Shown one piece after another: positions 28,162 through 46,762 of a DNA stretch of 64,000 nt. Position 1 is the first letter of the stretch; the number at the start of each line of letters is the position of its first letter. Below the pieces are notes generated by a model, which saw nothing but the letters and a program-made list of their open reading frames with translations, made no database searches and was not told the DNA's origin. The translations under genes and the position numbers were made by a program. Location: sequence record LC727698.1. The stretch is one strand, 5' to 3'.

Positions 28162-28204
28162 AAAATGCGTTATTTTGCACGTTTGCATTATGCTATACGC
28201 AAGT

Positions 28205-28233
28205 TTGCAATAACGTGCAAACGCATGTATAAC
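28205..28233 (+). promoter_or_regulatory. Sigma70-type promoter in GA/GG-free island upstream of tilS
   Basis: TTGCAA-N17-TATAAC. Confidence 0.5.
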
Positions 28234-28466
28234 GCTAATACAGCTAACAATACAGTGCATAAAAACATGTACAGCATACTAGCGTTACAACGCATATCGT
28301 TGAACTATAAATGTATATATATCTGGAGCAATATGGTATTCTTGTCAGTTACTACTGATGATACCTTAACTACATATCATATATATAGAAAAAGTTTAAG
28401 AACTGGTTTAGAATCGTGTAATTTTTCTTATGTACTTGGATTAGTTATGAAGGAAGGATATTAGGT

Positions 28467-29078: not shown

Positions 29079-29186
29079 ACACTCACTTCTAACAATGTTT
29101 GTTATTTCTATTCAAGCAAGGAATTATCATATAATACCGTATGTCGGTGTTAAACATAAACTTGTGTTTATTTTATCTAGTAGCAA

Positions 29187-29534
29187 ATGAATACTATAAT
29201 AACGCTAAGTGCTTTGCAGGAAACAATACAACCAGAGGACCGGTCATACCGCTATAATTTTATTATCAAAGATAGACGTGGTAATAATATATTTTATTGT
29301 GTAGAAATTGAAAATTCATTACAGTCGTGGTTTGTAGACTATACATATAACAATAGTTTGATATACTTAGATATATTTAAGATTCAGCTATTAACACAAA
29401 AAATATCATCTTATATTTTTAACAGAATAACAGTAGTATTGTCAGACAGTAACTCAAGTACAATTTTATACAATGAAATAGCAAATGATAGTATTAGTAG
29501 TAAAAATTATTCATCTAAAATAGTATTAGCATAA
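29187..29534 (+). CDS. Small paralog-array protein (divergent)
   Basis: MNTIITLSALQETI and IVLSDSNSSTI. Confidence 0.45.
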   Translation: MNTIITLSALQETIQPEDRSYRYNFIIKDRRGNNIFYCVEIENSLQSWFVDYTYNNSLIYLDIFKIQLLTQKISSYIFNRITVVLSDSNSSTILYNEIANDSISSKNYSSKIVLA

Positions 29535-29745
29535 ATGAATGTATTTCGGTATAAGACCATAACGCACTATTTGCATTAAATTCCAAACTAAAAATGTAAC
29601 TTCTTTATGTATATTCTTATTATTGCAATTCTAGTAAAATCTGTACAACTATTACTGAGTTAGATGTACAGGACAAAGAACCATAAAATGCTTGACTATC
29701 CATTCGTGTTAGGTTAATTTAACAAAATTATATAAGGTATTTTAA

Positions 29746-30078
29746 GTGTTTATCATTAAATTACAAAGCAATTGTAACAAAATAGAAATAGATAACTCAA
29801 AATACAATTACGGGTTTTTTATTGTTAACTCAGAAAACATGAAAGTATTCCATTACAGTAACAAAGAATCGTCTTTGTATTCTATGTTTGCAAAAAATCT
29901 ACATATCAATGTATTTTTGGTGTCTACCTTGTGTTGTATTATATGTTTCGACTATCCTACTTTATACTTAGAAATGGAATCAAACCGTGCAGTGACATTA
30001 GGTATAAATCCATGTTTCTTAAATATAGATATACAAGGTTCTCGGTTCCATAATTGGGATCCGGTGTGTTTTGTATAA
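29746..30078 (+). CDS. Small paralog-array protein (divergent)
   Basis: MFIIKLQSNCNKI. Confidence 0.5.
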   Translation: MFIIKLQSNCNKIEIDNSKYNYGFFIVNSENMKVFHYSNKESSLYSMFAKNLHINVFLVSTLCCIICFDYPTLYLEMESNRAVTLGINPCFLNIDIQGSRFHNWDPVCFV

Positions 30079-30126
30079 ACATGTGATATAATTTATGTTT
30101 AGTTATTTCTTAAATAAGGTATTGAA

Positions 30127-30468
30127 ATGAAGGAAAACAATATACTAGAAATGCAAGCAGGATGCTCAAACGTAACTGTTATAGGTAACTGTGTTATAAG
30201 TATAGAAGGATTATATGACAAACCTACAAAAACATTAAACTTTTTTGTAAGATATAATTTAAACCATGATTCAGAATACTTATCATACATTTACACATTT
30301 AAAAATGATATATGTGTACTGTCTTTATCTAGTAAATGTTTTATGATTAAAATGGCCTCAGAGATGTATTATAAAACTAGATCTGTATGTATTATTAATA
30401 ATAAAGGAAACGGATTGTTATATAGTTACAAAAATCACACATGGGCTCGGACATGCATTCTAATATAG
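30127..30468 (+). CDS. Small paralog-array protein (divergent)
   Basis: ILEMQAGCSNV and VLSLSSKCFMI. Confidence 0.45.
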   Translation: MKENNILEMQAGCSNVTVIGNCVISIEGLYDKPTKTLNFFVRYNLNHDSEYLSYIYTFKNDICVLSLSSKCFMIKMASEMYYKTRSVCIINNKGNGLLYSYKNHTWARTCILI

Positions 30469-30800
30469 AAAAAATTTATTATATTTCTAAAAATACACGA
30501 AGTATAAAGGTAATGGACCATACAATCACTATATGGTCGTTATATATTTCACCTAATATTACTATAATTTTATGGGCAACTAATTTAACTACAGGATTAT
30601 GTACCTTAAAATATAAAAATGAATTCAAAATAGATTTATTTAAATTAGTCAATACAGTGTATTCTATAAAAAACAGATATAGAAACAGTACATATGTATT
30701 AGATGATATAATGCACAATACTATATGCTCTGTGGGTATATTAAGACCCCGTATTGCAGATGAAGTATATTGCAGATATAGAATATCGTATGTCAGCTAG
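30441..30800 (+). CDS. Hypothetical protein (array-like)
   Basis: IYYISKNTRSI unit. Confidence 0.4.
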   Translation: MGSDMHSNIEKIYYISKNTRSIKVMDHTITIWSLYISPNITIILWATNLTTGLCTLKYKNEFKIDLFKLVNTVYSIKNRYRNSTYVLDDIMHNTICSVGILRPRIADEVYCRYRISYVS

Positions 30801-30949
30801 CATTACATATATTGTATCAATTACTGCTAGATGCACATCTATATATGAAGATGCGTATAGTGATTTCGTTATATTTTGTATAGCAGATGTATTTGGTAGT
30901 TATATAATTCAATATATGACAGAACGCAACAATAGGTTTATAGCTGTAT

Positions 30950-31273
30950 ATGAATATACATTTTCTACAATATGATATGTCTGATTCAAGTATATTATGC
31001 AATATAACAAGATATTCGTATACAATAAGACTGAGTAATTATACATCGTTTCATTTTGTTATATCCGGAATGGGTAGGCCTATAACAAAAGTTGTATCCA
31101 GTATACTGTGTACTCCTATTCATATAATAGATGTGTGTAATGTTTCGCATCGTGCAAGAGATACGATTTTTTCGTACAATGACACCCAATTACGCAGTTC
31201 TTTGCATTTGTTTTCTATATCATTTTGGAAGTTAAAAGCATATACTATGATAAACGTATCCTACATAATATGA
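30950..31273 (+). CDS. Hypothetical protein (array-like)
   Basis: MNIHFLQYDM start. Confidence 0.35.
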   Translation: MNIHFLQYDMSDSSILCNITRYSYTIRLSNYTSFHFVISGMGRPITKVVSSILCTPIHIIDVCNVSHRARDTIFSYNDTQLRSSLHLFSISFWKLKAYTMINVSYII

Positions 31274-31764
31274 TATTTCAAAAACCATTTATAGAATTAA
31301 ATAGTATCCCAGATTACACTCATCCGGGCGGATTTGCATACCAACGAAAAAATCATATACACGAAGGCGTAGACCTTTATTGTAAAAATAAAGAACCTGT
31401 GTTTACAATGTTATCGGGTAAAGTAGTTAATATAATAAAAGATTTTACAGGACCGGGCTGCGGAACACCTTGGTGGAATAAAACAAGTGCAATAGTAATA
31501 GAAGACGTATTCGGTGTATGGGTATACGGCGAAATATTAGTAGGAAATTGGATTAACATAGGAGATACTGTACCAGCTGGAACATGTATCGGCAGAGTAG
31601 AACAAGTGTTAAAAAAGAACAAAGGACGTCCTATGTCTATGCTTCACGTAGAACGATATACAAAAGGAACTACAAATTCTATTGGATTATGGCAATTAAA
31701 TACTAGCAGACCTGAAAATTTATTAGATCCAACACCTTTGTTACGGCGTATCATAAATGAATAA
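31270..31764 (+). CDS. M23-family peptidase
   Basis: HEGVDLY (HxxxD), V.aGd.IG-like IGDTVPAGTCIGRV, LHVE, LLDPT; start set at ATG 31270. Confidence 0.8.
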   Translation: MIFQKPFIELNSIPDYTHPGGFAYQRKNHIHEGVDLYCKNKEPVFTMLSGKVVNIIKDFTGPGCGTPWWNKTSAIVIEDVFGVWVYGEILVGNWINIGDTVPAGTCIGRVEQVLKKNKGRPMSMLHVERYTKGTTNSIGLWQLNTSRPENLLDPTPLLRRIINE

Positions 31765-32098
31765 TATATTATATATTCAGAATTTTATAAGAAGTAGAAA
31801 ATTAGAAGCAGAATACGGATGTATAGTTACCATTAATAATAATACAGGAGCTAGAGAATTTACAGCATATCATCTCAAAAACTGGCATAATTGTTCATTT
31901 ATATCCTATAATAATTGCAGTATAGATATTATTGCATTATGTAACCATACACACACGATAGCATATGGAGCAGATAATGCAAGTTTTATAATAAAAAATA
32001 ATAACAGAAATATACTACTGTCAGTAGTTGATACGAATATGACATATTCGTCTTGTTATTCATCTTCTGTAATTATAAATATTTCTGTTTTATTATAA
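31757..32098 (+). CDS. Small paralog-array protein
   Basis: MNNILYIQNF and IIALCNHTHTI. Confidence 0.5.
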   Translation: MNNILYIQNFIRSRKLEAEYGCIVTINNNTGAREFTAYHLKNWHNCSFISYNNCSIDIIALCNHTHTIAYGADNASFIIKNNNRNILLSVVDTNMTYSSCYSSSVIINISVLL

Positions 32099-32099
32099 A

Positions 32100-32423
32100 A
32101 TGAATTTAATATTTTGTATAGCTAGCATTGATAATATACAAATAGGTATAGACCGGTCAATCGGACATATAAACAATATAATATATATCCGAACTAGCCC
32201 CTCTAATGATATAATCAAATATATAACAGAAGTAAAATATGGTAAAACAGTATCACTTATGTTAAATCTCGATATATCAATATTTAAAGAATTATTTATT
32301 TTTATTTTGTCATGTAAATGTAAACACATCACTGAACTAAGAATATACAATAAAGTAGTATTTTATTTTTATTCTGATAACAGAAGATCTTTAACAGATT
32401 TGTTATATTACATAGGTCAGTAA
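32100..32423 (+). CDS. Small paralog-array protein
   Basis: MNLIFCIAS and IFILSCKCKHI. Confidence 0.5.
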   Translation: MNLIFCIASIDNIQIGIDRSIGHINNIIYIRTSPSNDIIKYITEVKYGKTVSLMLNLDISIFKELFIFILSCKCKHITELRIYNKVVFYFYSDNRRSLTDLLYYIGQ

Positions 32424-32535
32424 CAGTACATTTACAGAAAAATATAATATCTTATGTATTATTCATTATAAAAACTCTGTTGTGTTATTAAGTATTGTAT
32501 GTTAGCGTACAAGTTAATTAAATGCGGAACACTAA

Positions 32536-32829
32536 ATGGATATTATTCTTTTTATATCAAATAATACATACTATATAACATCAACGAGTAATAGCACATT
32601 CTTATTATACAGATTTGATCAAAAATGTATCTATGTTGTAACAAAAAATCTTAATTCACATCCGGTAGTGATAGACGACGGAAGTAATGGCTGGGGGACA
32701 ATATATGAGATTCCCGCATTAGTTCAGTTTTACACAGATATTTTTAAATTTTCTGTGCATCACGAGTTAATTCAAATATATGTGCTCACAAAAGTAGGTC
32801 AATTTTTCTCTAAGATTGTTACTTACTAA
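32536..32829 (+). CDS. Small paralog-array protein
   Basis: MDIILFISNNTYYI. Confidence 0.55.
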   Translation: MDIILFISNNTYYITSTSNSTFLLYRFDQKCIYVVTKNLNSHPVVIDDGSNGWGTIYEIPALVQFYTDIFKFSVHHELIQIYVLTKVGQFFSKIVTY

Positions 32830-33151
32830 TACAATTGTACAATACATAGGTAATTTGATGGACAATATATTTTATATTTCGTACGAGATAGCTGTCCAGT
32901 GTTCTAATATAACTACATTTTATTTAATTAATAAACACAATAGAGTATTTTATGCAATACGTTCAGCCGCAGGACACCCAATCGACATTTTCGATTTTGA
33001 TTGGAAACAAAAAATCTTACTAACGTCTAAATATTGTAATAAGCTTTTATTTATTATTAGTAGAGAAAAGATACAGGTAACTACTACTAAGTTAAAGATA
33101 TTTTATTGTCTTAGTAACGTATCTGCTAAATCGGATCAAGTTACACTATGA
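32816..33151 (+). CDS. Small paralog-array protein
   Basis: Internal MDNIFYISYEIAV and ILLTSKYCNKL. Confidence 0.45.
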   Translation: MLLTNTIVQYIGNLMDNIFYISYEIAVQCSNITTFYLINKHNRVFYAIRSAAGHPIDIFDFDWKQKILLTSKYCNKLLFIISREKIQVTTTKLKIFYCLSNVSAKSDQVTL

Positions 33152-33372
33152 ATATCATACCATTAATTTTAATTAGTGTATACTAGTTATTGTGACACTA
33201 TTAAATATGTCAATTAGATAAAATAAATTATTAATGAAAAATCTATTTCCTACCGGATGCATATTTAATATATTGGTATTATCTTATCACACAGATACAA
33301 TATATGCTGCATGTTACTCAGATTGTCGTGTTATTGCACTAAACAGTTATTATACATACTATATACCTTTAA

Positions 33373-33633
33373 ATGACTAAATTAATACTTACAATTTCTA
33401 TTAATACCAAACAGATAGCATTATTAAACGATGTTGTGCATTTTCGAAATTATAATAAAGCGGTATACTTTATAAATTTTTTATCTAAATCTAAGTCATT
33501 AATTATTGTGGACGAGTTAATAACAGATAGTTTTATTATCTTTTATATAAGTGAAAATTGTTCCGAAATTTATGTCACCCCTAGATATGCTTTTATATGT
33601 AATTTCAATGGGGTTGGGTTTTTTAGATCATAA
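33373..33633 (+). CDS. Small paralog-array protein
   Basis: MTKLILTISINTKQI and IFYISENCSEI. Confidence 0.55.
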   Translation: MTKLILTISINTKQIALLNDVVHFRNYNKAVYFINFLSKSKSLIIVDELITDSFIIFYISENCSEIYVTPRYAFICNFNGVGFFRS

Positions 33634-33664
33634 CTAGTTGTGTTAATTAGGATAACTATACTTA

Positions 33665-33958
33665 ATGAAATATGATTTTATATTACATATGAGTAATAAC
33701 ACAAATTGTATTATATTCGACACAAGTATTACCTTTGTTGACAACAAAGGTATATTCTTTTATAAAATAATACCAATACACTTGCATGGTATGTGTAATT
33801 TTCCTTATATAGATAAAAGTTGGTCAAACTATATTTCATTACCTATAATTATACAATATTATACAAATAAACTGGTATATTTACCGTCTATTATACTTTT
33901 TCGTCAAAATAAATCTAATATATCAGCAGATACTGTATTTCGTACAAATATGTTATGA
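33665..33958 (+). CDS. Small paralog-array protein
   Basis: FILHMSNNTNCI and IIIQYYTNKL. Confidence 0.55.
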   Translation: MKYDFILHMSNNTNCIIFDTSITFVDNKGIFFYKIIPIHLHGMCNFPYIDKSWSNYISLPIIIQYYTNKLVYLPSIILFRQNKSNISADTVFRTNML

Positions 33959-34236
33959 ACGATGAATTAATACTATTGTTAAGTAAAGAGACTTATATAA
34001 CTTCATTTTCTCATAACTGTGTAGACTTGTTCAGCGCTGCTGGAATTATATTTTATAGCATATCTATACCATACATGGGTTCCCGTGCTGCTAGCAGAAT
34101 ACATCATTTATATTTGTGTGTGTTTACACTATCTCCTTTCATAATACAATCATTTTGCCGTGTAATATTCGATAATAAGTATACAATTTGCATATCATAT
34201 AACGGTACACTTATATGGAAAGGTCTTTACCAATAA
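33955..34236 (+). CDS. Small paralog-array protein
   Basis: LILLLSKETYI and FIIQSFCRVI. Confidence 0.55.
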   Translation: MNDELILLLSKETYITSFSHNCVDLFSAAGIIFYSISIPYMGSRAASRIHHLYLCVFTLSPFIIQSFCRVIFDNKYTICISYNGTLIWKGLYQ

Positions 34237-34304
34237 CTTTTTCAGTTGCTATAATATGCACAATGTGCAATAATAAAAACAATGTGCAATTGTGAATAAA
34301 ATAT

Positions 34305-34604
34305 ATGAATATTATTATTAACATTCAAGAATCGACATCCGAAATCTTCTTTGACACATACTACATCACGTTAACGTCAAGTTTAGGCGGTCATGTTCTT
34401 TCGATAAACCGAAGAACAGGAAAAGGCGCAATTATACTTCATAATATAAAGTTAGATCACATCTATCCTATTATACTATTACAGAACGCAACTGTATCAC
34501 TTGTTGTATGGGGTGCTGTAGACATTAAAGTATCATTTAAAGATATATACGATGAATACATCTTCCTTGCTATAGGTAGAAGGCATTATTCTGATTATGC
34601 ATAA
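34305..34604 (+). CDS. Small paralog-array protein
   Basis: MNIIINIQESTSEI and IILLQNATVSL. Confidence 0.6.
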   Translation: MNIIINIQESTSEIFFDTYYITLTSSLGGHVLSINRRTGKGAIILHNIKLDHIYPIILLQNATVSLVVWGAVDIKVSFKDIYDEYIFLAIGRRHYSDYA

Positions 34605-34860
34605 AATTTATTATGACGAAATTTTAGAAATATCTAAAAAAGCTAGATTAATTGTAAATTACTCTGGCATCGTTTCTATATACACAAAATCTTCTAATTA
34701 TTATAATATAAATTATAATTTTTATAGTAATCCATTTAATCAGTGGAATAGGGCAATATTTATAGCATCTAAACAATGTGGACACATAGCATTTTCTAGT
34801 AACCGGATGCGTATATTAACTGATAAAAATATATTGTGGTATTATAGTACTCTTCTATAA
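34597..34860 (+). CDS. Small paralog-array protein
   Basis: ILEISKKARLI and IFIASKQCGHI. Confidence 0.5.
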   Translation: MHKIYYDEILEISKKARLIVNYSGIVSIYTKSSNYYNINYNFYSNPFNQWNRAIFIASKQCGHIAFSSNRMRILTDKNILWYYSTLL

Positions 34861-34875
34861 GGTATAGATCGAAAA

Positions 34876-35178
34876 ATGGAAATACCTAATGACAAGTGTA
34901 TGTTGTTAATATTTCTGAGTAGTGTCTCCGATACTATACACATAGAAATCAGTTTTAGAAAAAGAATTAGAAAATATTTGCACACACTAAAAATATACAA
35001 AGAAGATAACATTTGCATATTTATAAATGGCATACTACTATTTAAAAAAGATATATGTAACGATATAATAATTCCTATTTTGATACAATCGAACACAAGA
35101 TCTATATCACTGCATAACAACTTCTTAGAAATATTTTCTAACAGATATTATTTGATGTTATTTAGAAAAATGTCTTAA
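34876..35178 (+). CDS. Small paralog-array protein
   Basis: LIFLSSVSDTI and ILIQSNTRSI. Confidence 0.55.
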   Translation: MEIPNDKCMLLIFLSSVSDTIHIEISFRKRIRKYLHTLKIYKEDNICIFINGILLFKKDICNDIIIPILIQSNTRSISLHNNFLEIFSNRYYLMLFRKMS

Positions 35179-35192
35179 ATAGGAAAAAATGC

Positions 35193-35444
35193 ATGATTGT
35201 TATACTTCTTTCACACTTTACACGTGAACTAAATGCAGAATTTAATGAATTAGAACTTACTGTGTATGGTAATAGATTAGCGCAAATATATCCAACAGCA
35301 TTTATAGATACTAACATTCTATGGCATTATATGAGTGAATCTGATTTCTTACTATTTTATATTTCTAATAATGCAAAAACGATAAAATTAAACCATTCAC
35401 ACCGAATATTATTATATAACTCTCCCATACCGCACTATATTTAA
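35193..35444 (+). CDS. Small paralog-array protein
   Basis: MIVILLSHFTREL and LFYISNNAKTI. Confidence 0.55.
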   Translation: MIVILLSHFTRELNAEFNELELTVYGNRLAQIYPTAFIDTNILWHYMSESDFLLFYISNNAKTIKLNHSHRILLYNSPIPHYI

Positions 35445-35476
35445 AGAGATAAGTATGTGAACTATCATTTAAATAG

Positions 35477-35845
35477 TTGTTGTACAGAAACTACATTATT
35501 AAACTCTTTTTTAATAAGCAGGTTAATGTCCGTCTAAACCCTATGTGCAACCTACCATTTATTATATCAAATAATTCCTACACACTAACCTATGGACCAG
35601 ATAGAACGATGACAGGAGCAGGCATATACATTGCTAATATATACGGATTTGTGTTTCTATACTCAGTTGTTACTATTTCTAATTTTCAAATATGTTTTAG
35701 TATGCTTAACGAAATAGATCCTTTGTATTTGCAATACGAATGCGATTCAATAAAAACAATAAACACAAAAATGTATTATAGACTAAATGTCAATTCATTA
35801 CTTAATACAATGATATGTAAAGAATATTATGAATTTAATATTTGA
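35477..35845 (+). CDS. Small paralog-array protein
   Basis: FIISNNSYTL and LYLQYECDSI. Confidence 0.5.
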   Translation: MLYRNYIIKLFFNKQVNVRLNPMCNLPFIISNNSYTLTYGPDRTMTGAGIYIANIYGFVFLYSVVTISNFQICFSMLNEIDPLYLQYECDSIKTINTKMYYRLNVNSLLNTMICKEYYEFNI

Positions 35846-36113
35846 ATTATTAAGAAACACTAGTAAAATCATACCGTATGATGGTCTGAATGCTGTTAGA
35901 TTTATTCTTGTAAATACTGATTATATAAAAGTAGCATCTTTTTGTTTATCATTTTCTACATGGACCTGCCGTACATTTTTAAGTATAAACCAGTTTCAAA
36001 TGTCAGAATCTACGTTAGTTATCATATCTAATAAAATAAAGAAGATCAAAAGAGTAAAAAAATCATACGCTTTAGTTTTTGACGAATCATATATTCTGTT
36101 GAAAATCAAATGA
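35829..36113 (+). CDS. Small paralog-array protein
   Basis: MNLIFELLRNTSKI and LVIISNKIKKI. Confidence 0.55.
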   Translation: MNLIFELLRNTSKIIPYDGLNAVRFILVNTDYIKVASFCLSFSTWTCRTFLSINQFQMSESTLVIISNKIKKIKRVKKSYALVFDESYILLKIK

Positions 36114-36364
36114 TAATACATATCTCACATTTAACACATATAATAAATGCATATTCTAAATATATAATCGTCACTAATAAAGCTAATGAAATTATACTTT
36201 GCAATTACATATATAACCAAACTAAAATTTACATTAACAAAGTATTACCAAGTATCGACTTAATCTGTTATATTCAACATAACACAAAAACAATTAGTTA
36301 TCCCATTGTAAATAGCCATTTTCTATTATATCCATATCTTTGCAATAATGCCTTGGTTGTATAA
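36110..36364 (+). CDS. Small paralog-array protein
   Basis: MIIHISHLTHII and ICYIQHNTKTI. Confidence 0.6.
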   Translation: MIIHISHLTHIINAYSKYIIVTNKANEIILCNYIYNQTKIYINKVLPSIDLICYIQHNTKTISYPIVNSHFLLYPYLCNNALVV

Positions 36365-36366
36365 TT

Positions 36367-36648
36367 ATGGATTTTATTTTCCTACTACAACATAACACTT
36401 CTATTATATTATATCGTAATAGTATTATAGAATTATACACAGAAGACGAAATGCCAGTAATAGACATAGATATAACAAATTCTATGTTCATATATCTAGA
36501 TATTTTTAATGACAAAACTGCAATACTCTATCTACAACAAAATACACACAGTATAGGTATAGAATCATCAAATTCTTATTATATGATAAGAATGAGAAAT
36601 ATGTACCATAGAAACGTTTATTATATTATAACACATGGACTATATTAA
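36367..36648 (+). CDS. Small paralog-array protein (canonical)
   Basis: MDFIFLLQHNTSII and ILYLQQNTHSI. Confidence 0.7.
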   Translation: MDFIFLLQHNTSIILYRNSIIELYTEDEMPVIDIDITNSMFIYLDIFNDKTAILYLQQNTHSIGIESSNSYYMIRMRNMYHRNVYYIITHGLY

Positions 36649-36919
36649 ACTTATCTCCGCAGAAGTAAATCAAATTAAAAAATCCACCCATTCCGGCGGC
36701 ACCCGTCACGGCTTAACACTATATAACGTAGATGACCAACCTATAATAGAAATAAAGATCCAAAAAATAATATCCCGTGCATATGTGCGTGCAAACTACG
36801 ATAAGTTGTGTAATGAAATCTGCATTCTTTATATACAAAGCCAAACAACTTTAATATCTACCACACGGAACTCACTAGTAATCTTTACTTCCCACTATAT
36901 AGTTCACTCTATCATATGA
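36635..36919 (+). CDS. Small paralog-array protein (canonical)
   Basis: MDYIKLISAEVNQI and ILYIQSQTTLI. Confidence 0.7.
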   Translation: MDYIKLISAEVNQIKKSTHSGGTRHGLTLYNVDDQPIIEIKIQKIISRAYVRANYDKLCNEICILYIQSQTTLISTTRNSLVIFTSHYIVHSII

Positions 36920-37194
36920 ACCTAATATATGCACTGCAACGTAAAACTAGATATATATCCCAATTTGATACTACTTATCGTTTAATTAACTCAGATAGAA
37001 AATGCTTTTATCTTATAACACGCAAGAACAAAAAGACCATAGTAGACATAGACTATAATGTCTTTAATGATATTTTCGGTATATTACATTTACAGTCTAA
37101 AACACATATACTACAACGTTCATACTACCTAATAAAAATATATGATGTATGTACGGATTTAATATTTTTTATATACCACCATAACCATAAATGA
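36916..37194 (+). CDS. Small paralog-array protein (canonical)
   Basis: MNLIYALQRKTRYI and ILHLQSKTHIL. Confidence 0.7.
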   Translation: MNLIYALQRKTRYISQFDTTYRLINSDRKCFYLITRKNKKTIVDIDYNVFNDIFGILHLQSKTHILQRSYYLIKIYDVCTDLIFFIYHHNHK

Positions 37195-37472
37195 AATTTA
37201 TTATAACATTACAATCATACACAACTACAATACAGTTTCTAACTAATGATTTTATATTATATTCTGATAGAAATAAATTATTAGAATTAGGTATATACAA
37301 TAACAAATTCAACTGTTACATACATATCAATAATTTTAATAATAACAATATAATCATGTGTTATCTTCAGCATATAATTTATACAATACACATTCATCCC
37401 TTTGTTTTATCTATGTGTAATAGTAATTGGTTATCAGTTAATACAAAATGTTATTCAAGAAGACTTTATTAA
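37191..37472 (+). CDS. Small paralog-array protein (canonical)
   Basis: MKFIITLQSYTTTI and MCYLQHIIYTI. Confidence 0.7.
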   Translation: MKFIITLQSYTTTIQFLTNDFILYSDRNKLLELGIYNNKFNCYIHINNFNNNNIIMCYLQHIIYTIHIHPFVLSMCNSNWLSVNTKCYSRRLY

Positions 37473-37512
37473 AGTAATGAAGATGAATGATAGAAATCAC
37501 TACACTATAACT

Positions 37513-37793
37513 AATGAGTGATAATACTCTAATAGATAGAAACTATAGTGTAACAACCAATGAGTGATAATACTAATACTGATAGATATAGCTATAGTAT
37601 ACCAATAATGAGTGATACTAATAGAAGCTATAGTGTACAAATAATGAGTGAATTATGTAGTACATATTTCGGTGAATACTGATATAATACCAATAGATAG
37701 TGATACTAATAGATATCAATACTAATACTAATATTGATAGATAGCTATAGTGTACAAATAATGAGTGAAATAGGTAGTACATATTTCGGTGAA
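37513..37793. repeat. Imperfect iteron-like direct repeats (putative origin)
   Basis: AATGAGTGA at 37513, 37559, 37607, 37643, 37760; CTATAGT four times; a ~50-nt unit GCTATAGTGTACAAATAATGAGTGAA..GTAGTACATATTTCGGTGAA at 37627-37676 and 37744-37793. Confidence 0.85.
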
Positions 37794-38180
37794 CCCTAAC
37801 ATCACCAAAGAAAGAAGGACCAAAATTTTGGAAATCTTGCTCTATAGGTCCCATTCATTTTCTTCCCAGTTACTTTTATATTCTTTCAGTTTCTAGCCAT
37901 TTCTAACCATTTTTATAGATTTTTTTTGGAAAAATCCGTTTTCTGCTATATAGGGACCTTCTTATAAAATATAAGTTCTTTTTCAATAAAAAATATTTTT
38001 TTTGAAAATTTCCAATTCTTGCTATATAGGCCGGTTTCATTATATATCCCCATTTGCATAACATATACGGAATATAGTATGCTATACGTATATAAACCGT
38101 GACTCTAGACAACTCACTTACTGTACGCTTGTTAATATAATTCCATTTCGTAGTATAACGTATATATAGGAAAACTAGTT

Positions 38181-38450
38181 ATGGATCTGATACTATTTCT
38201 TCAACATAATACTGTAGAGATGGACTATAGTGAATGGTACGTTCGTCTTAACAACAAGAATGAAAAGCATATAGCTATGATTACAGGTAACGGTCTTAGA
38301 CTGTATTATAGAAATATCAATAGCTTACTTGGTATTCTTCATTTACAATACTGTAATTATAATTTTTTCATGCATACGGACAATTATATTTCTTTTACTT
38401 TTGCTAATAATAATAGGTTTGTACATGAAATACATGTTGATTTGAAATAA
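38181..38450 (+). CDS. Small paralog-array protein (canonical)
   Basis: MDLILFLQHNTVEM and ILHLQYCNYNF. Confidence 0.7.
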   Translation: MDLILFLQHNTVEMDYSEWYVRLNNKNEKHIAMITGNGLRLYYRNINSLLGILHLQYCNYNFFMHTDNYISFTFANNNRFVHEIHVDLK

Positions 38451-38453
38451 TAT

Positions 38454-38777
38454 ATGGATTTCATACTATTACTTCAATCTCAATGTCATGAGATTGTATA
38501 TACCAAACAAATGATTGATATGCTTAATGCGCATGATAATAGGCAGTTCGTATATGGAATTACGTTGCCTATGGGGAGAAAACATGTGTCATATAGGGCA
38601 TATTGTTTGTATAATAATATATGTGATGTGATAGGTTTATTACATATGCAATCCATTACATCATTAATAGAAGTTAACCATTTTAAATCAGTTTTTGGTA
38701 AAAAAGATATTATTGTTAATATGAGGTTTGTTAACGGTTATCTTCAATATGTTATAGTATCTAATATATGGACTTAA
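38454..38777 (+). CDS. Small paralog-array protein (canonical)
   Basis: MDFILLLQSQCHEI and LLHMQSITSLI. Confidence 0.7.
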   Translation: MDFILLLQSQCHEIVYTKQMIDMLNAHDNRQFVYGITLPMGRKHVSYRAYCLYNNICDVIGLLHMQSITSLIEVNHFKSVFGKKDIIVNMRFVNGYLQYVIVSNIWT

Positions 38778-39052
38778 TATTATTATTTCAGTCTCGTTGT
38801 TATAAGATTTGGTATTCAGATTATATTATAGATATGATCGACTATAGTGATTATACTATAGTATCATTACTACGCCCGCCGAATGGGCGTATGTATGCCT
38901 ATTGTTCGTGTAACAATATAAACAACGAAATTAGTATAATGCATTTGCAGAATAGCATACATTCATTACAAATAAGTTATAGTACCCGTTCTATAATGTG
39001 TCGTATGACTAATGTGTATGAAGATCTAATTCAATATATTTGTATACTTTAG
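38768..39052 (+). CDS. Small paralog-array protein (canonical)
   Basis: MDLILLFQSRCYKI and IMHLQNSIHSL. Confidence 0.7.
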   Translation: MDLILLFQSRCYKIWYSDYIIDMIDYSDYTIVSLLRPPNGRMYAYCSCNNINNEISIMHLQNSIHSLQISYSTRSIMCRMTNVYEDLIQYICIL

Positions 39053-39330
39053 TAATGTATTTTATCTTGTTTATACAGAAATTGTGTTGTTCGATTAGAA
39101 GGGCTTCGCATGGATTCGATATTTTTGATACAAATGAAGTAGCATATTCATTAATAGATCATCATGGTTTCAGTATGAAACATTTTGTTTCATACTCTGT
39201 TATAAATGATGTAATAGGAATTATACATTTACAAGTGCATACAAATAAGTTTTATTTTCTTAATGAAAAACATCAAATGGATATGATTTGTTTTCTAGAT
39301 AGTAAAGGCGGTCATTTTTTTAGTTTATAG
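39040..39330 (+). CDS. Small paralog-array protein (canonical)
   Basis: MYFILFIQKLCCSI and IIHLQVHTNKF. Confidence 0.65.
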   Translation: MYTLVMYFILFIQKLCCSIRRASHGFDIFDTNEVAYSLIDHHGFSMKHFVSYSVINDVIGIIHLQVHTNKFYFLNEKHQMDMICFLDSKGGHFFSL

Positions 39331-39342
39331 AGGACGGAATTT

Positions 39343-39606
39343 GTGTTATTAATATTAATGCTTCAGCGTAATGTCGAATGGATTCTTTATACTGATTGTG
39401 AAATTCGACTTGTTCTGCCCGATTATAACACGTTATATCGTTTTCTAAATCAGATACAGAAAATTAATGGGTATCTAAATTGCCATGCTAGTAATGACAT
39501 TGTAGGTATGTTTTATTTACAGTACAATTGTGATACTATATCATTTAATAGATTTGATGAATTTATGATACTAAACCACAATGGCGTAATAATTTTTGGC
39601 TGGTGA
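39343..39606 (+). CDS. Small paralog-array protein (canonical)
   Basis: MLLILMLQRNVEWI and MFYLQYNCDTI. Confidence 0.65.
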   Translation: MLLILMLQRNVEWILYTDCEIRLVLPDYNTLYRFLNQIQKINGYLNCHASNDIVGMFYLQYNCDTISFNRFDEFMILNHNGVIIFGW

Positions 39607-39902
39607 CTAGTATGGATATTATATTGATCCTTAGCAGTGAAGTTATAAGAATACAAGGTTGTTTTTATGATATAGAAACTTTACAAATAAGGTTCTTCAA
39701 TAAATACGACTCAATATATTTTTGTAATAAAATGGGAGGATTTGTTAACTATAAAACATTTCCCAATGAACTATTAAGTATAATTCATTTGCAGCAGAAT
39801 ACACATAGGTTGATAACACACAGTAAATGTATATTTTTTGATAGTGTAGATTTTATTTCTATTCACTGGGAGACTTTGTTTGACACAAACGAATATGTAT
39901 AA
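39603..39902 (+). CDS. Small paralog-array protein (canonical)
   Basis: MDIILILSSEVIRI and IIHLQQNTHRL. Confidence 0.65.
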   Translation: MTSMDIILILSSEVIRIQGCFYDIETLQIRFFNKYDSIYFCNKMGGFVNYKTFPNELLSIIHLQQNTHRLITHSKCIFFDSVDFISIHWETLFDTNEYV

Positions 39903-40146
39903 TGATATAAATTATATATTACTAATTAGTAACCAGTCTAAATATATTTCGTTGAAGGCACTTGGATTAACTGTAAAAACACGTGAACCAAGGTTAACTC
40001 ATTATATTATATTTTAAATATGAACGAAGAATATGATATATTATATTTGTCTAACAATACTATGCAAATAACATTTCGTTTTTCAGTATATTGTTTTTAT
40101 GATAAAACTCGTAGTATTATATATTGTCAATAAGACAGAAATATAA

Positions 40147-40461
40147 ATGGATTTAATATTAACACTTCAGCATAAAACTGTGCTAATATCACAGTTTAGT
40201 GCATTATTTGTATTTCAAAATATAAACAGTGATACTATATTTTGTTTGGATATAAGTAGACATGTATATTATTTCGAAATAATATTCAGGTTATATAATA
40301 ATAAGAATGGCATGGTGTATTTGCAACATGCCATTAATTCTATTAAGTTTACCTTTAGTTTACAATATCATACAATTCGTGGATATTCTAGTATACCATC
40401 TATATATATGTATGATAAAAAATATGCTATTGTACACGTACCATATGTTAGGAATATTTAA
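40147..40461 (+). CDS. Small paralog-array protein (canonical)
   Basis: MDLILTLQHKTVLI and MVYLQHAINSI. Confidence 0.7.
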   Translation: MDLILTLQHKTVLISQFSALFVFQNINSDTIFCLDISRHVYYFEIIFRLYNNKNGMVYLQHAINSIKFTFSLQYHTIRGYSSIPSIYMYDKKYAIVHVPYVRNI

Positions 40462-40760
40462 TGGATCTTATATTATACATTCAGTACAGTGCTCATAGAA
40501 TAGAAACTGTTTATAAATCATATCTATTATATAATAAACATTCGCTTTATTACAGACTGTCTGTATATAAGAGATTATTAATACCATCAGGTAGTAAATC
40601 ATATGCAAGGGCTTCGGCTGAATATTCTGCTATTACAGACAAAATAGGAATTATACACTTACAATCGAAAACACACGCAATATTATTTGTTATGGATGGT
40701 TGTATGTGCATTCACGACAAATCGTATCAAACACTCCATTATATTATACCAAAGTCATAA
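40461..40760 (+). CDS. Small paralog-array protein (canonical)
   Basis: MDLILYIQYSAHRI and IIHLQSKTHAI. Confidence 0.7.
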   Translation: MDLILYIQYSAHRIETVYKSYLLYNKHSLYYRLSVYKRLLIPSGSKSYARASAEYSAITDKIGIIHLQSKTHAILFVMDGCMCIHDKSYQTLHYIIPKS

Positions 40761-42131
40761 TGTTCATAAGTTTTATTCCGCCTGTTGCAATGTTGATACG
40801 ACTACAATCAAATCTACATATTATCTGTTTTGATTCTATTTATGATAGTATAGTGTTTTGTGATAAAGACTACGACGAAATACATTGCTGCTTATGGTAG
40901 CGTGTTTGCATTTAACGCAAAAACATGTTATACAGTATTGTTTGTTGAGTATTTTGACATTGTTGTTTCTAAAAATCTTTTATATAAAGGATTAATATGC
41001 ATAATATATTTAAATTATCATATTGTACAAATATGTTTAAATTTAAAATATTATGGGATCAAAAAGTATACCTATGCTCGTTTATGTCATTGCGGTATAC
41101 TACCCTATATATTTCTGCAGGTCGTATCAGATAAATGGTAACAAATATATTAGAATTAATGTATGTATGTCACCATACATATAATATAACAACTGACAGC
41201 TACTATAACATTTTCTTCTTAAATAAAAATAATAAAATTATCTTTGTTGTGTATTAAAACAAATGGGAATATTTCTCTTATCACGCAATACTTGCTATAT
41301 TTGTGTTATACATGTCAGACGTATTGTATACAAGATTAAGATGTATGACAGACACGGCAATTATGTGTTTACAATTAATGTTATCTAAGAACATATTAAA
41401 TTATATAGAATTTGGTTGTATGTAATACAGTTTAATAATGGCAACAGATATTGATAAAATAACATACATTTCATTTAACTCATGCTATATATCAGTTAAT
41501 CGTTTTAGTGTTATTATATATTATGAGTACGGTAGATTGATTTTATATGATGATACCCCCGGGCTTATATAAGAACGTATTCTACATACAGTATAATGTG
41601 CGTCATATAAGCATATATTATTTTGATGCATGCGAATGTAATATATTACAGGTAGAATGCAATAATTTTCTTACTCTAACATATAAATTAAATGAAAAAA
41701 CCAATAAGTAATATAGTTGAATTATCGCTTAATACGCACCGGTTTAATACCAATTATATAACTAGTGCTCATTGTTTAGTATTTTATAATGCGTCGTCAT
41801 ATCCTATACATTATGTTCGTTTACACACAAACAAGCGTTAACACTTATGTCGCCGGTATCAATTCATAATATAGTTTGTATTCAACACTATCTTAATAGA
41901 TGGTATACTAGAATATCCCCAACAGGGATTAATGTGTATTCAGATTCATATGTTAGAATTAGAATAAATGTTCATAAATAAAAATATTATAAATCACGAT
42001 ATACATTATGATATGTTGCAGGTATCTTCGTGCGCACATACAATAGATTCATCGCTATGTAGTACATATCTATTGGCATGCATTTATAATAGTAATGAAA
42101 AAATTATTATAATTAGTGTTGCATATCTAAG

Positions 42132-42290
42132 ATGAATGGTATAAAAGATATAATAGAATTTTCATCGCATGCATACGAAATATGTGCAAATACAGCAAGA
42201 CTTAGAGATATAGTATACTACTCGATACTCATAAAGGCAAAAGACGGTCTTGCATTTTATATGGTAGACTCGTTTGCATATATAACATGA
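42132..42290 (+). CDS. Single-unit array member (52 aa)
   Basis: MNGIKDIIEFSSHAYEI (hand translation). Confidence 0.4.
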   Translation: MNGIKDIIEFSSHAYEICANTARLRDIVYYSILIKAKDGLAFYMVDSFAYIT

Positions 42291-43546
42291 CCAGTATCCT
42301 TGAATGTTCTTACAATACTTCTAATATTATGTTTCGTTTTTGTAAAAACATTAACCTTTTAGTTGTGAACTTTCTAAACAAAAATGCTAACATACATTTC
42401 ATTGTAATAGTTATATACAATTACTAATACATAGGAGAGTAATAAATGAATAGAGCAGCAAAGAAAAATGTTTCTATATTTGTTATTCAGAATCATACTT
42501 TTAGAGTTCATGTTGTGCGATATGATTCTGCGAGAATTTCAATATATCTCTCACTTGTACATAATTGCGTTGCATCTTAAGAACTATATCTGCATAATGT
42601 AGGTTACATTTGCATGTATAGGATTATCTTTCATATAATATATGCTTATTAACTATACGACATGTATTGAATTACTTTATAGTATTGTATGATTCGTAAA
42701 AATATAGTTCTAATATCACACAACACGTCAAAAATAATATTAGAAAGAAGAACAAGTAAAGTATTACGTGTTTCTATGTTTAAATCAATCGGAAAATACT
42801 ACTACCATTATTATACGGCGTGTGGAAATATATAATGCAAGATCATCATTTCACTACACTGTTGTATATGTCTAATCGTGCAGATAGAATAAAGATTTTC
42901 CGACAGCCTTCCTGTCTTATTGTATATATTAAGTCAGGTATGTTATATATTAATAAACAATTCTTAAAATGTTAGAATATATAGATACTCTCAAATATAA
43001 TTACATTTTAACTGTATGCAGCGGTGTAGAGTCTATATCATTTGAATCATTTACTAGATCAGTAATATCAGTTTCCATAATATATAATAATATTACTATC
43101 TTTCCGTACCAAACTACACGAACTATACTGTATGGTGTATAATCTTATTTTTATTTCTTTTAATGTTTCTTTAATTAGTTTTTCTATTTTTAATAAAACA
43201 TTTGAAGTTTATATTTATGGAAAAATGTTATTGGTAATTTATTATACAGGACTGCATATATGTTAGATATATTGCTACGGTTCCAACGCAGAGTGGATAC
43301 AATTAAGGTGGAGTTAATATGGCGTCACTTGCATTTTTATGAAAAAGCCGGCGAGGAGTTAGAGTTATTTCATATTATATTTCTGCCGCCCGATCACCGA
43401 AGTATTAATTAACAAAAACAAGTTGTATTTTTCGGCATAAAAATTTATGAATAAAGATACAAACAAAGAATCACCTATTATTAAAGAATTATATTTTATA
43501 TTAAGATTGTAAGTAAAATAAAATACTTTTAGAATCTAAAACTAAA

Positions 43547-43696
43547 ATGATCGATTGGGTATTTAAATTGTCTGCTAGTTGCTACGAAATAGACGGACAA
43601 CACAGTGAGTCAATAAGAATATATAATTCATATTGTCTTTTAGGAACTATACAATGTTATTGTGCTCAGTTAAAAATAAATTTATATAAATTTTAA
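43547..43696 (+). CDS. Single-unit array member (49 aa)
   Basis: MIDWVFKLSASCYEI (hand translation). Confidence 0.45.
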   Translation: MIDWVFKLSASCYEIDGQHSESIRIYNSYCLLGTIQCYCAQLKINLYKF

Positions 43697-44024
43697 TATT
43701 GTGGGAAGAATTCTTTTAAATAGGCATACACTATATGAATGATCTATTACAATACCAACTCACATTATGTTCCATATCTTTGCAGAAAGCTCGTTTTAAG
43801 TCAGGCAATGTGTATTACATTCTAATTGAACGTAACGACAGCGGTAGGTATTCCCGAGATGTAAAAATACTTAAATGATATGCGTATATTTGTAATATCA
43901 CAAAATTGCATGACTATCAGACTTTTTTATCATACATATTTCATTAAAGATGTAAATTATGATTCAATTTGTGTATTATATAAAACGAATAGCAGAATTG
44001 TAATACATCCGAGTTTTACAGTAG

Positions 44025-44222
44025 ATGAATATATTCGATCTGTCTTATAATTCTTCATCTATTTTGATGAAATCGAATAGAATATACATTAGTAATGATA
44101 CCTATTATAATTATTCTGTAGGCGCTACATATGTATTACCTGCAATAACAAAATATATACATCAAACATTCTATGTAAACGCTGCAATATATAGATTTTT
44201 AGATACAGGTATACTAGTATGA
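44025..44222 (+). CDS. Array-like small protein
   Basis: MNIFDLSYNSSSI. Confidence 0.45.
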   Translation: MNIFDLSYNSSSILMKSNRIYISNDTYYNYSVGATYVLPAITKYIHQTFYVNAAIYRFLDTGILV

Positions 44223-44407
44223 AATTCAATATATTTAAATTGCAAAGAGGATGTCACTTTATAGATTGTCATTTTTATGACATTCTTAGATTTTCAAAAC
44301 CTACATATTTTCGAGATGCTGATAGAATAACTATATTTTCATTAATAGGTACTAATAGTATCAGAATTTACGAGGATATGTATAAAGGATATGCACAAAC
44401 CATATGA
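44219..44407 (+). CDS. Array-like small protein
   Basis: MKFNIFKLQRGCHFI. Confidence 0.5.
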   Translation: MKFNIFKLQRGCHFIDCHFYDILRFSKPTYFRDADRITIFSLIGTNSIRIYEDMYKGYAQTI

Positions 44408-44688
44408 TTGAAATATTAATATTTTCGAGTGCTAGTGATTATATTAGTATAAGACATGATATGGCACGGCTATATAATCTTAATGGTGTTAGTGAATTAA
44501 TATTTGTATCAAAACCATACAAATATATTATATTAACTAATTTAAAAAATCATATAGGTATATTCTGTATTTCAAATATAATAAGTGAAAGGGTGATGGG
44601 AGATATTACTAGTAACGAATGTTGGGCTTATCCTTGGCCTCCAGATACTGGCATAGATGTATATATTGATTTCCTGTATAAAAATTGA
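44404..44688 (+). CDS. Array-like small protein
   Basis: MIEILIFSSASDYI and IFCISNIISE. Confidence 0.5.
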   Translation: MIEILIFSSASDYISIRHDMARLYNLNGVSELIFVSKPYKYIILTNLKNHIGIFCISNIISERVMGDITSNECWAYPWPPDTGIDVYIDFLYKN

Positions 44689-44754
44689 TGAGCTTTCTAC
44701 TAAACACACAATATAACCATAGACAAATAAGTGCATTATGCTAATATATACATG

Positions 44755-45190
44755 CTTACTAAACAGTTACTTGTTAAGTAAGTTAAAAAGTCTGTAACAG
44801 TGATGTTACAGGATACACAGGCAAATACGGTTGGAAGATGCTGTGTAAAGAACAAATATCCAGCTCATTCCTAGGCATTATAGCCTACACATTATATTTG
44901 AATGGGCATAAAAACTTCCAAAGAACCTTCGAAATTTTCTCATAGGATAGTGTATTAGAAGGAATGCACTATCAGGAAGCTGTAGGTGATGGTTGCTATC
45001 CCAGACAGTCCTTTCTAAAATACTTTAATATGATATAAAGTTCTATGCAACCGTATACATGCTGTAAGATATTAGATTACACCATGTATTAAACGTAAAA
45101 GCAAAACCTTCAGTTAGTAATCTCGCAGTGAAGGGGGTAGGTGAGTGCTACCCAAACTCAACAAACAACTAATGGTCTAGAAAAGGTATA
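44755..45190 (+). ncRNA. Long ORF-free structured leader / ncRNA candidate
   Basis: Follows TAGACA-N16-TAATAT (44720-44747); several hairpins such as CTGTAACA-GTGA-TGTTACAG and GATAGTGTATT-AGAAGG-AATGCACTATC. Confidence 0.4.
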
Positions 45191-45196
45191 GTATAC

Positions 45197-45604
45197 ATGC
45201 AACATACTCACATTCGTTTCTACAACGAAGAAACTCAACAGATCGATAACCGCCGTGGCGCTACTGTTGCCTGGGAAACCGCCGGCAACAAGATCCGTAT
45301 TTCCGTAGCAGCATGTTCGGAAATGGATAACTTCAACCGCAAGACCGGACGTGAACATGCTGCTAGCCGACTCGAAAGTGGCGACTACATCGAGTTTAAC
45401 GGCACCGAACTTCTTAATGCACAGATGTCTTCTGTAAGTCATGTGCAGTCTGAAGGTCTCGTTCGTGCTATGTGCTTCTTGCTAGCACAAGGCAAAGGCG
45501 ATCTATATTACCCGGCAAGCGAAGGTCAGCTTCGCAGCGAAGCCGAGTGCAATAGCTACAACGCCCTCGAGTACCTGAAACACCAGATGGGCATTCATCA
45601 GTAA
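45197..45604 (+). CDS. Hypothetical protein, host-type codon usage
   Basis: GATVAW...SVAACSEMDNFNRKTGREHAASRL; GC-rich codons. Confidence 0.8.
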   Translation: MQHTHIRFYNEETQQIDNRRGATVAWETAGNKIRISVAACSEMDNFNRKTGREHAASRLESGDYIEFNGTELLNAQMSSVSHVQSEGLVRAMCFLLAQGKGDLYYPASEGQLRSEAECNSYNALEYLKHQMGIHQ

Positions 45605-45617
45605 GTATTCGGCCATT

Positions 45618-45660
45618 CGGAATTGCGATTTAGGTTTTGGAATTCTAAATCGCAATTCCG
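45618..45660. terminator. Long perfect hairpin after gene
   Basis: CGGAATTGCGATTTAG-N11-CTAAATCGCAATTCCG (16 bp). Confidence 0.65.
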
Positions 45661-45845
45661 GTTTCCAAATTCAATTTTAGGCACAAACTCGGATCCGCAT
45701 TTGCATTTTGCATTTACATTTTGTGTTCTGAGTGTATATGCAAAATGCAATCGCGCATGTTGTCGATGCATTGGCTAATCTTTTATTTTTGATAGTTTAG
45801 AAAAGATTAAGAACAGAAACTATCTGTAAATTAATAAAAATAACA

Positions 45846-45874
45846 TTTACATTACATACACATATGCATATACT
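45846..45874 (+). promoter_or_regulatory. Sigma70 promoter with no ORF downstream
   Basis: TTTACA-N17-TATACT. Confidence 0.7.
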
Positions 45875-45880
45875 ATATAC

Positions 45881-46158
45881 AAGTTATGCGCTGTTGCATA
45901 CGTAAATACCTCCTATGTTGTTTAGATATGTCGATTCTGGTATAACCAGATAGACCTAAGGATGATGCTAGTGATTCCTTAGTATTGTATATTCTAGCTG
46001 AGTATAAAGAGTAAGGGGCTTTATACAAATAACAATTCCCTAGGCAAGATATACCGCTCCGTTGTGCTGACGAGCATAATTTGCCCAGATACAGAGCACG
46101 TGACTGGTCTGAGGAGCATTTATATCAGAAAGGCAGACTTATGTTTGCCTTTCTTTTT
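45881..46158 (+). ncRNA. ~280-nt sRNA candidate
   Basis: Bounded by promoter 45846-45874 and terminator AGAAAGGCAGAC-TTAT-GTTTGCCTTTCT-TTTT (46127-46158); internal hairpins; CCTCCT near the 5' end. Confidence 0.55.
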
Positions 46159-46177
46159 GAGCAGATATTCTCTTATT

Positions 46178-46261
46178 CACTTCCTTATTCATTTCTTTAT
46201 TCATCTCTATTTCGTTTGTCACTTCCTTATTCATTTCTTTATTCATCTCTATTTCATTTGT
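46178..46261. repeat. 42-bp pyrimidine-rich tandem repeat (2 copies)
   Basis: CACTTCCTTATTCATTTCTTTATTCATCTCTATTTC(G/A)TTTGT at 46178 and 46220. Confidence 0.9.
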
Positions 46262-46383
46262 TATTGCAAATAAGACTAATTCTTATTTGCGTTTGTAATT
46301 TCATTTGTTATTGCAAATAAGACTAATTCGTATTTGCATTTGCAACGAAAAAGAATATGCAAATAATAACTAATCTTATTTGC
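46251..46383. promoter_or_regulatory. Cluster of three Fur-box-like 19-bp operators (47-bp tandem duplication)
   Basis: GCA-AATAAGACT-A-ATTCTTATT-TGC at 46266-46290, a near-identical copy 47 nt later, and GCA-AATAATAAC-T-AATCTTATT-TGC at 46359-46383. Confidence 0.55.
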
Positions 46384-46546
46384 ATTTGCACTGCCTATTA
46401 TATGGATTGGTAGCATACTTGGAAATGGATAGTAAATAAGTAGTTGATTTGTTTATAAATTTTAATTCTATATCGTACTGATTGACCTTGCTATATATAG
46501 CTCGCGCGCGTATACAAGATGGTAAAAAATAATTTAAAAATATTTT

Positions 46547-46679
46547 AAAAAATGCTTGACTTTCCATTACTACGACCTTAAAGTGCGAACTGTAGACGCA
46601 GTGTGTAGAGCGCTACATAGTAAGCAACGCAGAAAGTAAACAAAAAATGCTTGACGCAATGCAAACTAGGCTCTACACT
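46547..46679 (+). promoter_or_regulatory. Two tandem sigma70 promoters with shared AAAAAATGC-TTGAC upstream element
   Basis: TTGACT-N17-TAAAGT (46556-46584) and TTGACG-N17-TACACT (46651-46679). Confidence 0.75.
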
Positions 46680-46762
46680 GTATACAAGCTTAAGGGGTAG
46701 GTGCCCCGAAAGTGTAGTAAGTAAACAACATAATCCTTCCATCAGCTACAGAGGTATACAAC

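Follow-up and report, generated by a model that had tools for sequence, protein, structure and literature searches.

A non-coding gap in Pseudomonas phage 30-3 as the probable left boundary of a long direct terminal repeat and packaging junction

The 708-nt non-coding gap at positions 37473..38180 of the DNA analysed here, which the open reading frame list places between two members of a ~90-aa paralog family, is very probably a boundary of the direct terminal repeat (DTR) of a jumbo phage and the junction at which its DNA is packaged, as judged from alignment with the ends of a sister phage. The DNA is the last 64 kb of record LC727698 (Pseudomonas phage 30-3, 284,544 bp, genus Wroclawvirus), a PA5oct-like jumbo phage. 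This 64,000-nt stretch is called the window; its coordinates plus 220,544 give those of the record, and the whole 284,544-bp genome was rebuilt from the public LC727698 record. A preliminary description had proposed a replication origin in the gap, as distinct from a terminal repeat or packaging site; the site coincides with the DTR boundary of PA5oct, an outcome that the description had itself named as refuting, and an iteron-type theta origin is not supported. The combination of repeats and a flip in skew can, in a phage, indicate a genome end instead of an origin.

Megablast of positions 36,500-39,500 matches LC727698 at 100% and ten records from eight related phages, which include PA5oct, MIJ3, Paride and Callisto, at 91-95%, and a search for more distant DNA with the region gives matches confined to 11 Wroclawvirus records. 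The PA5oct record (MK797984) annotates a repeat_region at 1..39080, a 39,080-bp DTR that was found by double coverage and whose length is termed 'estimated' in the paper on the phage (PMC7318152), and the ends of PA5oct were set with read mapping and PhageTerm (Lood et al. 2020, PMC7318152). The last base of that record aligns to window position 37,802 and its position 1 to 37,803, which puts the inferred terminase cut and left DTR edge at 37802..37803 (CCCTAACAT/CACC, the slash marking the cut), between the repeat array and the T-rich stretch of the gap. The junction is invariant in eight phages; a conserved 38-mer at the boundary has no exact match in viral or metagenome collections, and no independent contigs ending there were found. 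Position 39,080 of PA5oct aligns to LC727698 10,697 (GGTGGAT/TGTTACG). By homology with PA5oct, the left 26.2 kb of the DTR occupy 37803..64000 on the plus strand and the repeat continues for 10,697 nt at the LC727698 record start, which gives a predicted DTR of ~36.9 kb for 30-3, against 39.08 kb in PA5oct, and a predicted virion DNA of ~321 kb. The physical ends of 30-3 can be deduced because the alignment to the PA5oct ends holds at base level; they are predicted by homology, those of PA5oct being set from reads, and 30-3 and its relatives gain predicted physical ends that are absent from their GenBank records.

Within the predicted repeat, all ORFs of at least 60 aa between 38,181 and 44,688 lie on the plus strand and read inward from the left end. 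RNA-seq of PA5oct shows early transcription of the DTR from the plus strand, which is the strand given here, and the PA5oct repeat carries 105 genes, many of them early-transcribed (PMC7318152). The main text of the PA5oct paper has no description of arrays, shared motifs or skew (PMC7318152). A Pfam search with eight larger DTR ORFs gives one match only, to the Ead/Ea22-like model (PF13935, E = 2e-8), and the ORF with this domain has 253 aa and lies at 53,731-54,492. The counterpart of PA5oct ncRNA001, which makes up 2-5% of phage RNA-seq reads in that phage, is found at 45,901-46,136 (99% identical, no Rfam family match) and is directly followed by tandem repeats of 42-47 nt at 46,150-46,342, the whole region covering 45,901-46,342. 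Islands of 40-56% G+C occur within the DTR of this 33% G+C genome at 45,000-48,000, at 52,000-56,000 and at LC727698 6,000-10,000. Near the record end, at 63,380-63,447, a perfect 18-nt tandem repeat (3.4 copies) overlaps a 12-nt repeat.

The genes on the two sides of the gap belong to one family and lie on one strand, as had been noted earlier, and an HMM built from eight downstream genes matches the four adjoining upstream genes with E = 3e-16 to 4e-8. No family was matched in a PHROG search of four paralogs, the immediate neighbours of 83-107 aa. The paralog array as a whole (32,536-41,141) consists of ~25 tandem ORFs of 83-122 aa, most of which have an N-terminal MDxILxLQ motif and an internal HLQ motif; it straddles the DTR boundary, and near the boundary the number of paralog genes varies among relatives, with extra copies in 30-2 and Paride. 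Two minus-strand ORFs within the gap are rejected as genes: the one at 37903-38112 has 1-2-nt indels inside it in close relatives, and the one at 37618-37854 lies almost entirely within the repeat array, whose unit number varies between phages. A cluster of 12 tRNA genes, which includes three Met(CAT) and two Leu(TAA), is located elsewhere in the window, at 18,668-22,888, and agrees with what has been reported for the tRNAs of PA5oct.

The unique-sequence side of the cut is occupied by a degenerate direct-repeat array on the plus strand (37488..37802), which abuts the cut and whose unit is formed by CTATAG, 9-11 nt and (A)ATGAGTGA. The repeats that had been listed from inspection are all present: five copies of AATGAGTGA (37513, 37559, 37607, 37643 and 37760), four array copies of CTATAGT (37543, 37592, 37628 and 37745) and a duplicated unit, first put at ~50 nt, which measures 60 nt (37626-37685 and 37743-37802, 90% identity) and is nested in a higher-order 113-nt duplication (37567-37676 and 37684-37793, 81% identity). 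The repeats are non-random, with motif counts far above chance. AATGAGTGA is found nowhere else in the 64-kb window, where 0.67 copies are expected against the five seen, and 0 of 100 shuffles reach five. Successive AATGAGTGA copies are 46, 48, 36 and 117 nt apart, an irregular spacing that is out of helical phase, and similarity among the array units is just 65-84%. All eight relatives compared, which are phages ~92% identical, vary in how many units they have and in how these are arranged, and the array of 30-3 is shorter than that of PA5oct. The octamer TTCGGTGA lies in this array at 37785..37792 on the plus strand, 10 nt upstream of the left cut.

The GenBank records of Paride (OR805295, at 158,126-158,490) and Deifobo (OR805293) label the left-boundary array 'CRISPR'. 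A CRISPR array is rejected here, given degenerate repeats, 'spacers' that also recur, and distances between repeats that range from 36 to 117 nt. No cas genes were found in the window, and its Rfam-type RNA families are 12 tRNAs only, with no CRISPR RNA family. The label in both records looks like a false positive.

From the junction to 380 nt on its DTR side, the sequence, which includes a palindrome and three boxes, is almost invariant in eight phages. The perfect 12-bp palindrome CCAAAATTTTGG (37820..37831) lies 18 nt inside the DTR and is identical in the eight phages. The start of box 1, TTGCTCTATAGG (37837..37848, plus strand), is 34 nt to the right of the cut in all relatives. The unit of box 2 and its T-tract (37919..37954, plus strand) consists of an eight-T tract, GGAAAAA and then CTGCTATATAGG, and that of box 3 and its T-tract (37995..38030, plus strand) is 81% identical to it. 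Comparison of relatives reveals short variable repeats between boxes 1 and 2 (37853..37905, plus strand; a 21-nt unit and a 10-11-nt unit), and because these vary, the spacing of boxes 1 and 2 differs between phages: values of 96, 106-107 and 127 nt are seen, a change by roughly one or two turns of the helix. Boxes 2 and 3 keep the same distance among relatives (74-77 nt). The three YTGCTMTATAGG boxes had been recognised in the preliminary description and do exist, at 37837, 37943 and 38019, with two of the coordinates first given being off by 1. They are the only copies in the genome (284.5 kb), all on the plus strand, with 0.01 expected per window. The motif at 46487 that had been called similar is TTGCTATATATAGC, which is only loosely alike and is missed by a search that tolerates one mismatch at most, so this part of the description does not hold.

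The right boundary of the DTR repeats this organisation in part. In seven phages, the sequence up to the right cut and ~45 nt beyond it is invariant and is then followed by a hypervariable array, with 1 to 5 copies of CTATAGG across the seven. The right array of 30-3 (LC727698 10,725-10,811) has the same orientation as the left array, starts ~30-45 nt outside the right boundary and contains three copies of the 29-nt unit CCGTCTATAGGTTCACTTATGAGTCATTT (region LC727698 10,440-11,340). This unit is composed of CTATAG, 8 nt and AT(G/A)AGT and is related to the left-array motif. The bipartite motif CTATAG-N6-13-ATGAGT, both hexamers of which were picked after viewing both arrays, occurs genome-wide seven times on the plus strand and never on the minus strand, with 0.3 expected per strand; of these copies, the left array has four and the right array two. 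The octamer TTCGGTGA, which was also picked after inspecting the sequence, stands 9 nt before the right cut and 10 nt before the left one; it is not rare, with seven copies on the plus strand and three on the minus strand of the genome and 2.7 expected per strand, and PA5oct has TTCGGTGG instead of TTCGGTGA as its right-hand octamer. The matched offsets of the octamer and the presence of the bipartite motif at both boundaries are suggestive and no proof. Both cut-adjoining sequences are more conserved than the surrounding genes; each DTR boundary has a conserved core of its own and a hypervariable outer array, and TTCGGTGA at 9-10 nt before the cut is a possible third feature in common. Consensus-like TTGACA elements are also seen just inside the DTR at the right boundary.

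The strand composition changes at the left boundary. The C- and A-rich stretch at 35207..37706 (plus strand), which spans the last ~six paralog genes of the unique region, is the most C-skewed part of the genome and its only segment at the 1.5-kb scale with a GC skew < -0.15, reaching a minimum of -0.26 in a genome with mean +0.057 and sd 0.081. The G- and T-rich stretch at 38150..40000 (plus strand) spans the first six paralog genes inside the DTR. The two 60-mers that had been offered as examples are exact, with 18 C and 3 G at 36841-36900 and 3 C and 13 G at 38581-38640. The claim built on them, a GC-skew switch independent of gene orientation, stands as a local feature and falls as a genome-scale switch of polarity. 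The cumulative GC skew had been expected to reach its minimum near 37.5-38.1 kb; the whole-genome minimum is at record position 41,732, ~68 kb off. In the rebuilt genome the curve descends over the minus-strand structural block and climbs over plus-strand genes to a maximum at ~283,150 (record), and the site is a dip of 143 units within a range of 5,750 units. The minimum at LC727698 ~41,700 coincides with the end of the minus-strand structural block and is indistinguishable from a gene-orientation effect; it is also the first place to look for a genome-scale origin.

The local switch is nevertheless not explained by gene orientation, because the flanking genes are of the same family and strand and their third codon positions flip. 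Third positions have G/C = 37/91 in the upstream stretch, and G/C = 89/53 with A/T = 160/276 in the downstream stretch, a flip that points to a mutational signature rather than an amino-acid effect. The jump in GC skew at 38156 is the second largest of the genome. Purine skew is about zero on both sides, and it is the keto skew (G+T versus A+C) that flips at the site, with a cumulative minimum at 37,825, 22 nt from the cut. The keto jump is also the second largest in the genome, the largest one adjoining a change of gene strand, and at the exact cut position it has an empirical p of 0.002-0.005 in windows of 1-2.5 kb. The cut lies at the centre of the switch, which dies away within ~2.5 kb in either direction. 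At the right boundary of 30-3 the jump is non-significant at the exact position (p 0.09-0.6), and the polarised substitution spectrum of eight relatives, with small counts, shows no significant asymmetry. The most A+C-skewed stretch of the genome is LC727698 5,801-7,300.

The same signal was sought in other phages with long terminal repeats. The Xanthomonas jumbo phage XacN1 (AP018399; PMC5852040) has a DTR of 65,875 bp, which carries early or takeover functions. In the 120 kb sampled from it, the top two keto jumps (0.308 and 0.289, with 0.155 in third place) fall within ~225 and ~100 nt of its DTR boundaries (~65,876 and ~318,796), and the genes on either side of its internal left boundary are minus-strand genes. 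Transcription, in the form of simple gene orientation, is rejected as the cause of the skew, as the flanks of the left boundary are same-strand in both phages, plus in 30-3 and minus in XacN1. The jumps in CBB, which was partly sampled, are weak, of the same sign and non-significant, and T5 has no keto jump at its DTR boundaries.

Among other explanations of the gap, a classical bidirectional (theta) origin with iterons is very improbable. Direct repeats and a local minus-to-plus skew switch that does not follow gene orientation are what such an origin would offer, but every defining feature that was tested fails: the regular repeats of ~17-22 bp that iterons form are replaced by the irregular, out-of-phase spacing described above, the copy number changes among phages ~92% identical, and the global skew minimum lies far away and tracks the gene strand. 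There is no DnaA box (<=1 mismatch) in 37,000-40,000 and no AT-rich unwinding element above the background (AT 64-82% per 50 nt, with ~72% locally), no initiator gene is nearby, the neighbours being paralogs without a known family, and the DNA helicase and ribonucleotide reductase genes named in the record are >120 kb away. The site, moreover, coincides with a predicted genome end. A different proposal is that DNA synthesis begins at the DTR boundary, which is compatible with the packaging-junction explanation and would account for the skew. It could take the form of a nick whose 3' end is processed and extended with strand displacement, duplicating the DTR, or of a secondary origin that acts locally next to the terminal repeat, comparable to those near the ends of T7. 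In packaging of the T7 type, the concatemer has one DTR per unit and the virion has two, so extra DTR synthesis is needed. A site-specific start of synthesis at the boundary is possible because the local switch has the polarity of diverging forks, the bottom strand being apparently exposed to the left and the top strand to the right, and third codon positions show this polarity in G/C as well as in A/T; the coincidence of the two largest XacN1 jumps with both of its boundaries speaks in the same direction. The non-significant right boundary of 30-3, the weak signal of CBB, the absence of one in T5 and the substitution spectrum of the relatives count against it, divergent genes could contribute at the XacN1 right boundary, and the mechanism is speculative, so that this proposal is considered possible and somewhat unlikely. 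Its extension to long-DTR jumbo phages in general is held with still more reserve: strand-specific synthesis, nick-primed or from a local origin, would start at each repeat boundary and make the second repeat copy before packaging, with the A+C to G+T jump as its heritable trace and the arrays as loading sites. If true, the 'origin' signal would report the duplication of the terminal repeat and not the replication of the genome.

The boxes and the T-rich sequence upstream of them might instead form a cluster of early promoters for the host polymerase at the leading end of the genome, with the array as a regulatory element. Phage T7 has its early promoters A1-A3 at the leading genome end. The boxes of 30-3 point at the first DTR genes, are found a short way inward from the predicted genome end and show strict conservation, boxes 2 and 3 have TTGGAA or TTGAAA 17 nt before TATAGG, and PA5oct, which needs the host RNA polymerase, shows early transcription almost exclusively of the plus strand (PMC7318152). 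Against this, the conserved T at the last position is missing from the candidate -10 hexamers TATAGG and TATATA, a consensus sigma-70 scan (hexamers 16-18 nt apart) returns none of the three boxes, and the region holds five promoter-like matches where shuffles have a mean of 8.6; a consensus promoter and terminator scan finds nothing at the boxes. The box motif is also absent elsewhere in the 37-kb early region, box 1 differs in its spacing to the T-tract, and the highly transcribed early genes of PA5oct in RNA-seq are gp34-gp105 and gp450 and not the boundary genes, which leaves promoters as an unlikely reading. It is improbable that the gap holds nothing more than functionless, slippage-prone repeats, or a degenerate CRISPR-like array, in a long intergenic space with a coincidental skew. 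The highly variable copy number and the 'CRISPR' labels of two GenBank records would fit this, but the dissimilar units and repeated 'spacers' are not those of a CRISPR array, a related motif in the same orientation is present at the other DTR boundary, the cut-adjoining sequences are more conserved than the genes around them, and 22 nt separate the keto skew minimum from the cut.

The explanation preferred here, a packaging junction at a DTR boundary with putative cut-positioning elements, is likely when taken as a whole. According to it, the gap 37,473-38,180 would join the end of the unique genome to the left edge of the long DTR, and the replicating head-to-tail DNA would be cut by the packaging enzyme between 37,802 and 37,803, which would generate the left end of the virion chromosome. 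The array, the palindrome and the three T-tract/TTGCTATATAGG boxes would be binding sites for the machinery that recognises or positions the cut, not initiator iterons, and the candidate binders would be the terminase small subunit or an accessory protein. This assignment of the arrays, palindrome and boxes as putative sites of the packaging machinery is a tentative one, with somewhat less than an even chance; it draws on their position, their pattern of conservation and their presence at both boundaries. A packaging site alone predicts no strand-composition switch, which counts against the explanation. The most likely cause of the skew is exposure of single-stranded DNA in a strand-specific manner next to the boundary, and the switch would be a record of that exposure and not of genome-wide fork direction.

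Among known systems, the left boundary of PA5oct is the same locus in a sister phage, and its junction, three boxes and first DTR genes align base for base with those of 30-3. Iteron origins, such as the lambda ori and plasmid oriV, are alike in their clustered non-coding direct repeats, whereas in 30-3 the spacing is irregular, the copy number is variable and there is no unwinding element, DnaA box, initiator gene or genome-scale switch. The pac site of SPP1 has a cut, pacC, with the boxes pacL and pacR to its sides, to which the small terminase binds. The site of 30-3 resembles it in that repeated boxes with A/T tracts, here predicted sites, lie to either side of a cut, but packaging in SPP1 is of the headful type and proceeds from a single pac cut, and SPP1 lacks an exact DTR. 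The terminal repeat of T7 is reportedly flanked, as Dunn and Studier described in 1983, by the arrays SRR and SRL and by the end-proximal promoters and origins phiOR and phiOL. The T7 concatemer junction is alike in that short imperfect repeat arrays enclose its terminal repeat on either outer side, as they also do with the DTR in 30-3, and in that packaging, transcription and replication elements are crowded there. It differs in that the T7 repeat has 160 bp and the one described here ~37 kb, the repeat units are unrelated in sequence, and T7 uses its own RNA polymerase, whereas none was found in PA5oct (PMC7318152). By analogy, T7 may be considered the nearest precedent for synthesis linked to a boundary. 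XacN1 shares no sequence similarity with 30-3, has no obvious array at its left boundary and has another gene orientation, but it is alike in its very long DTR and in an A+C to G+T jump of the same sign at both boundaries. The composition jump at repeat boundaries, which is seen in these two distantly related jumbo phages, is a testable lead on how terminal repeats tens of kb long are regenerated from concatemers with one copy per genome, and it gives precise coordinates for a search for nicks, nascent strands and bound proteins.
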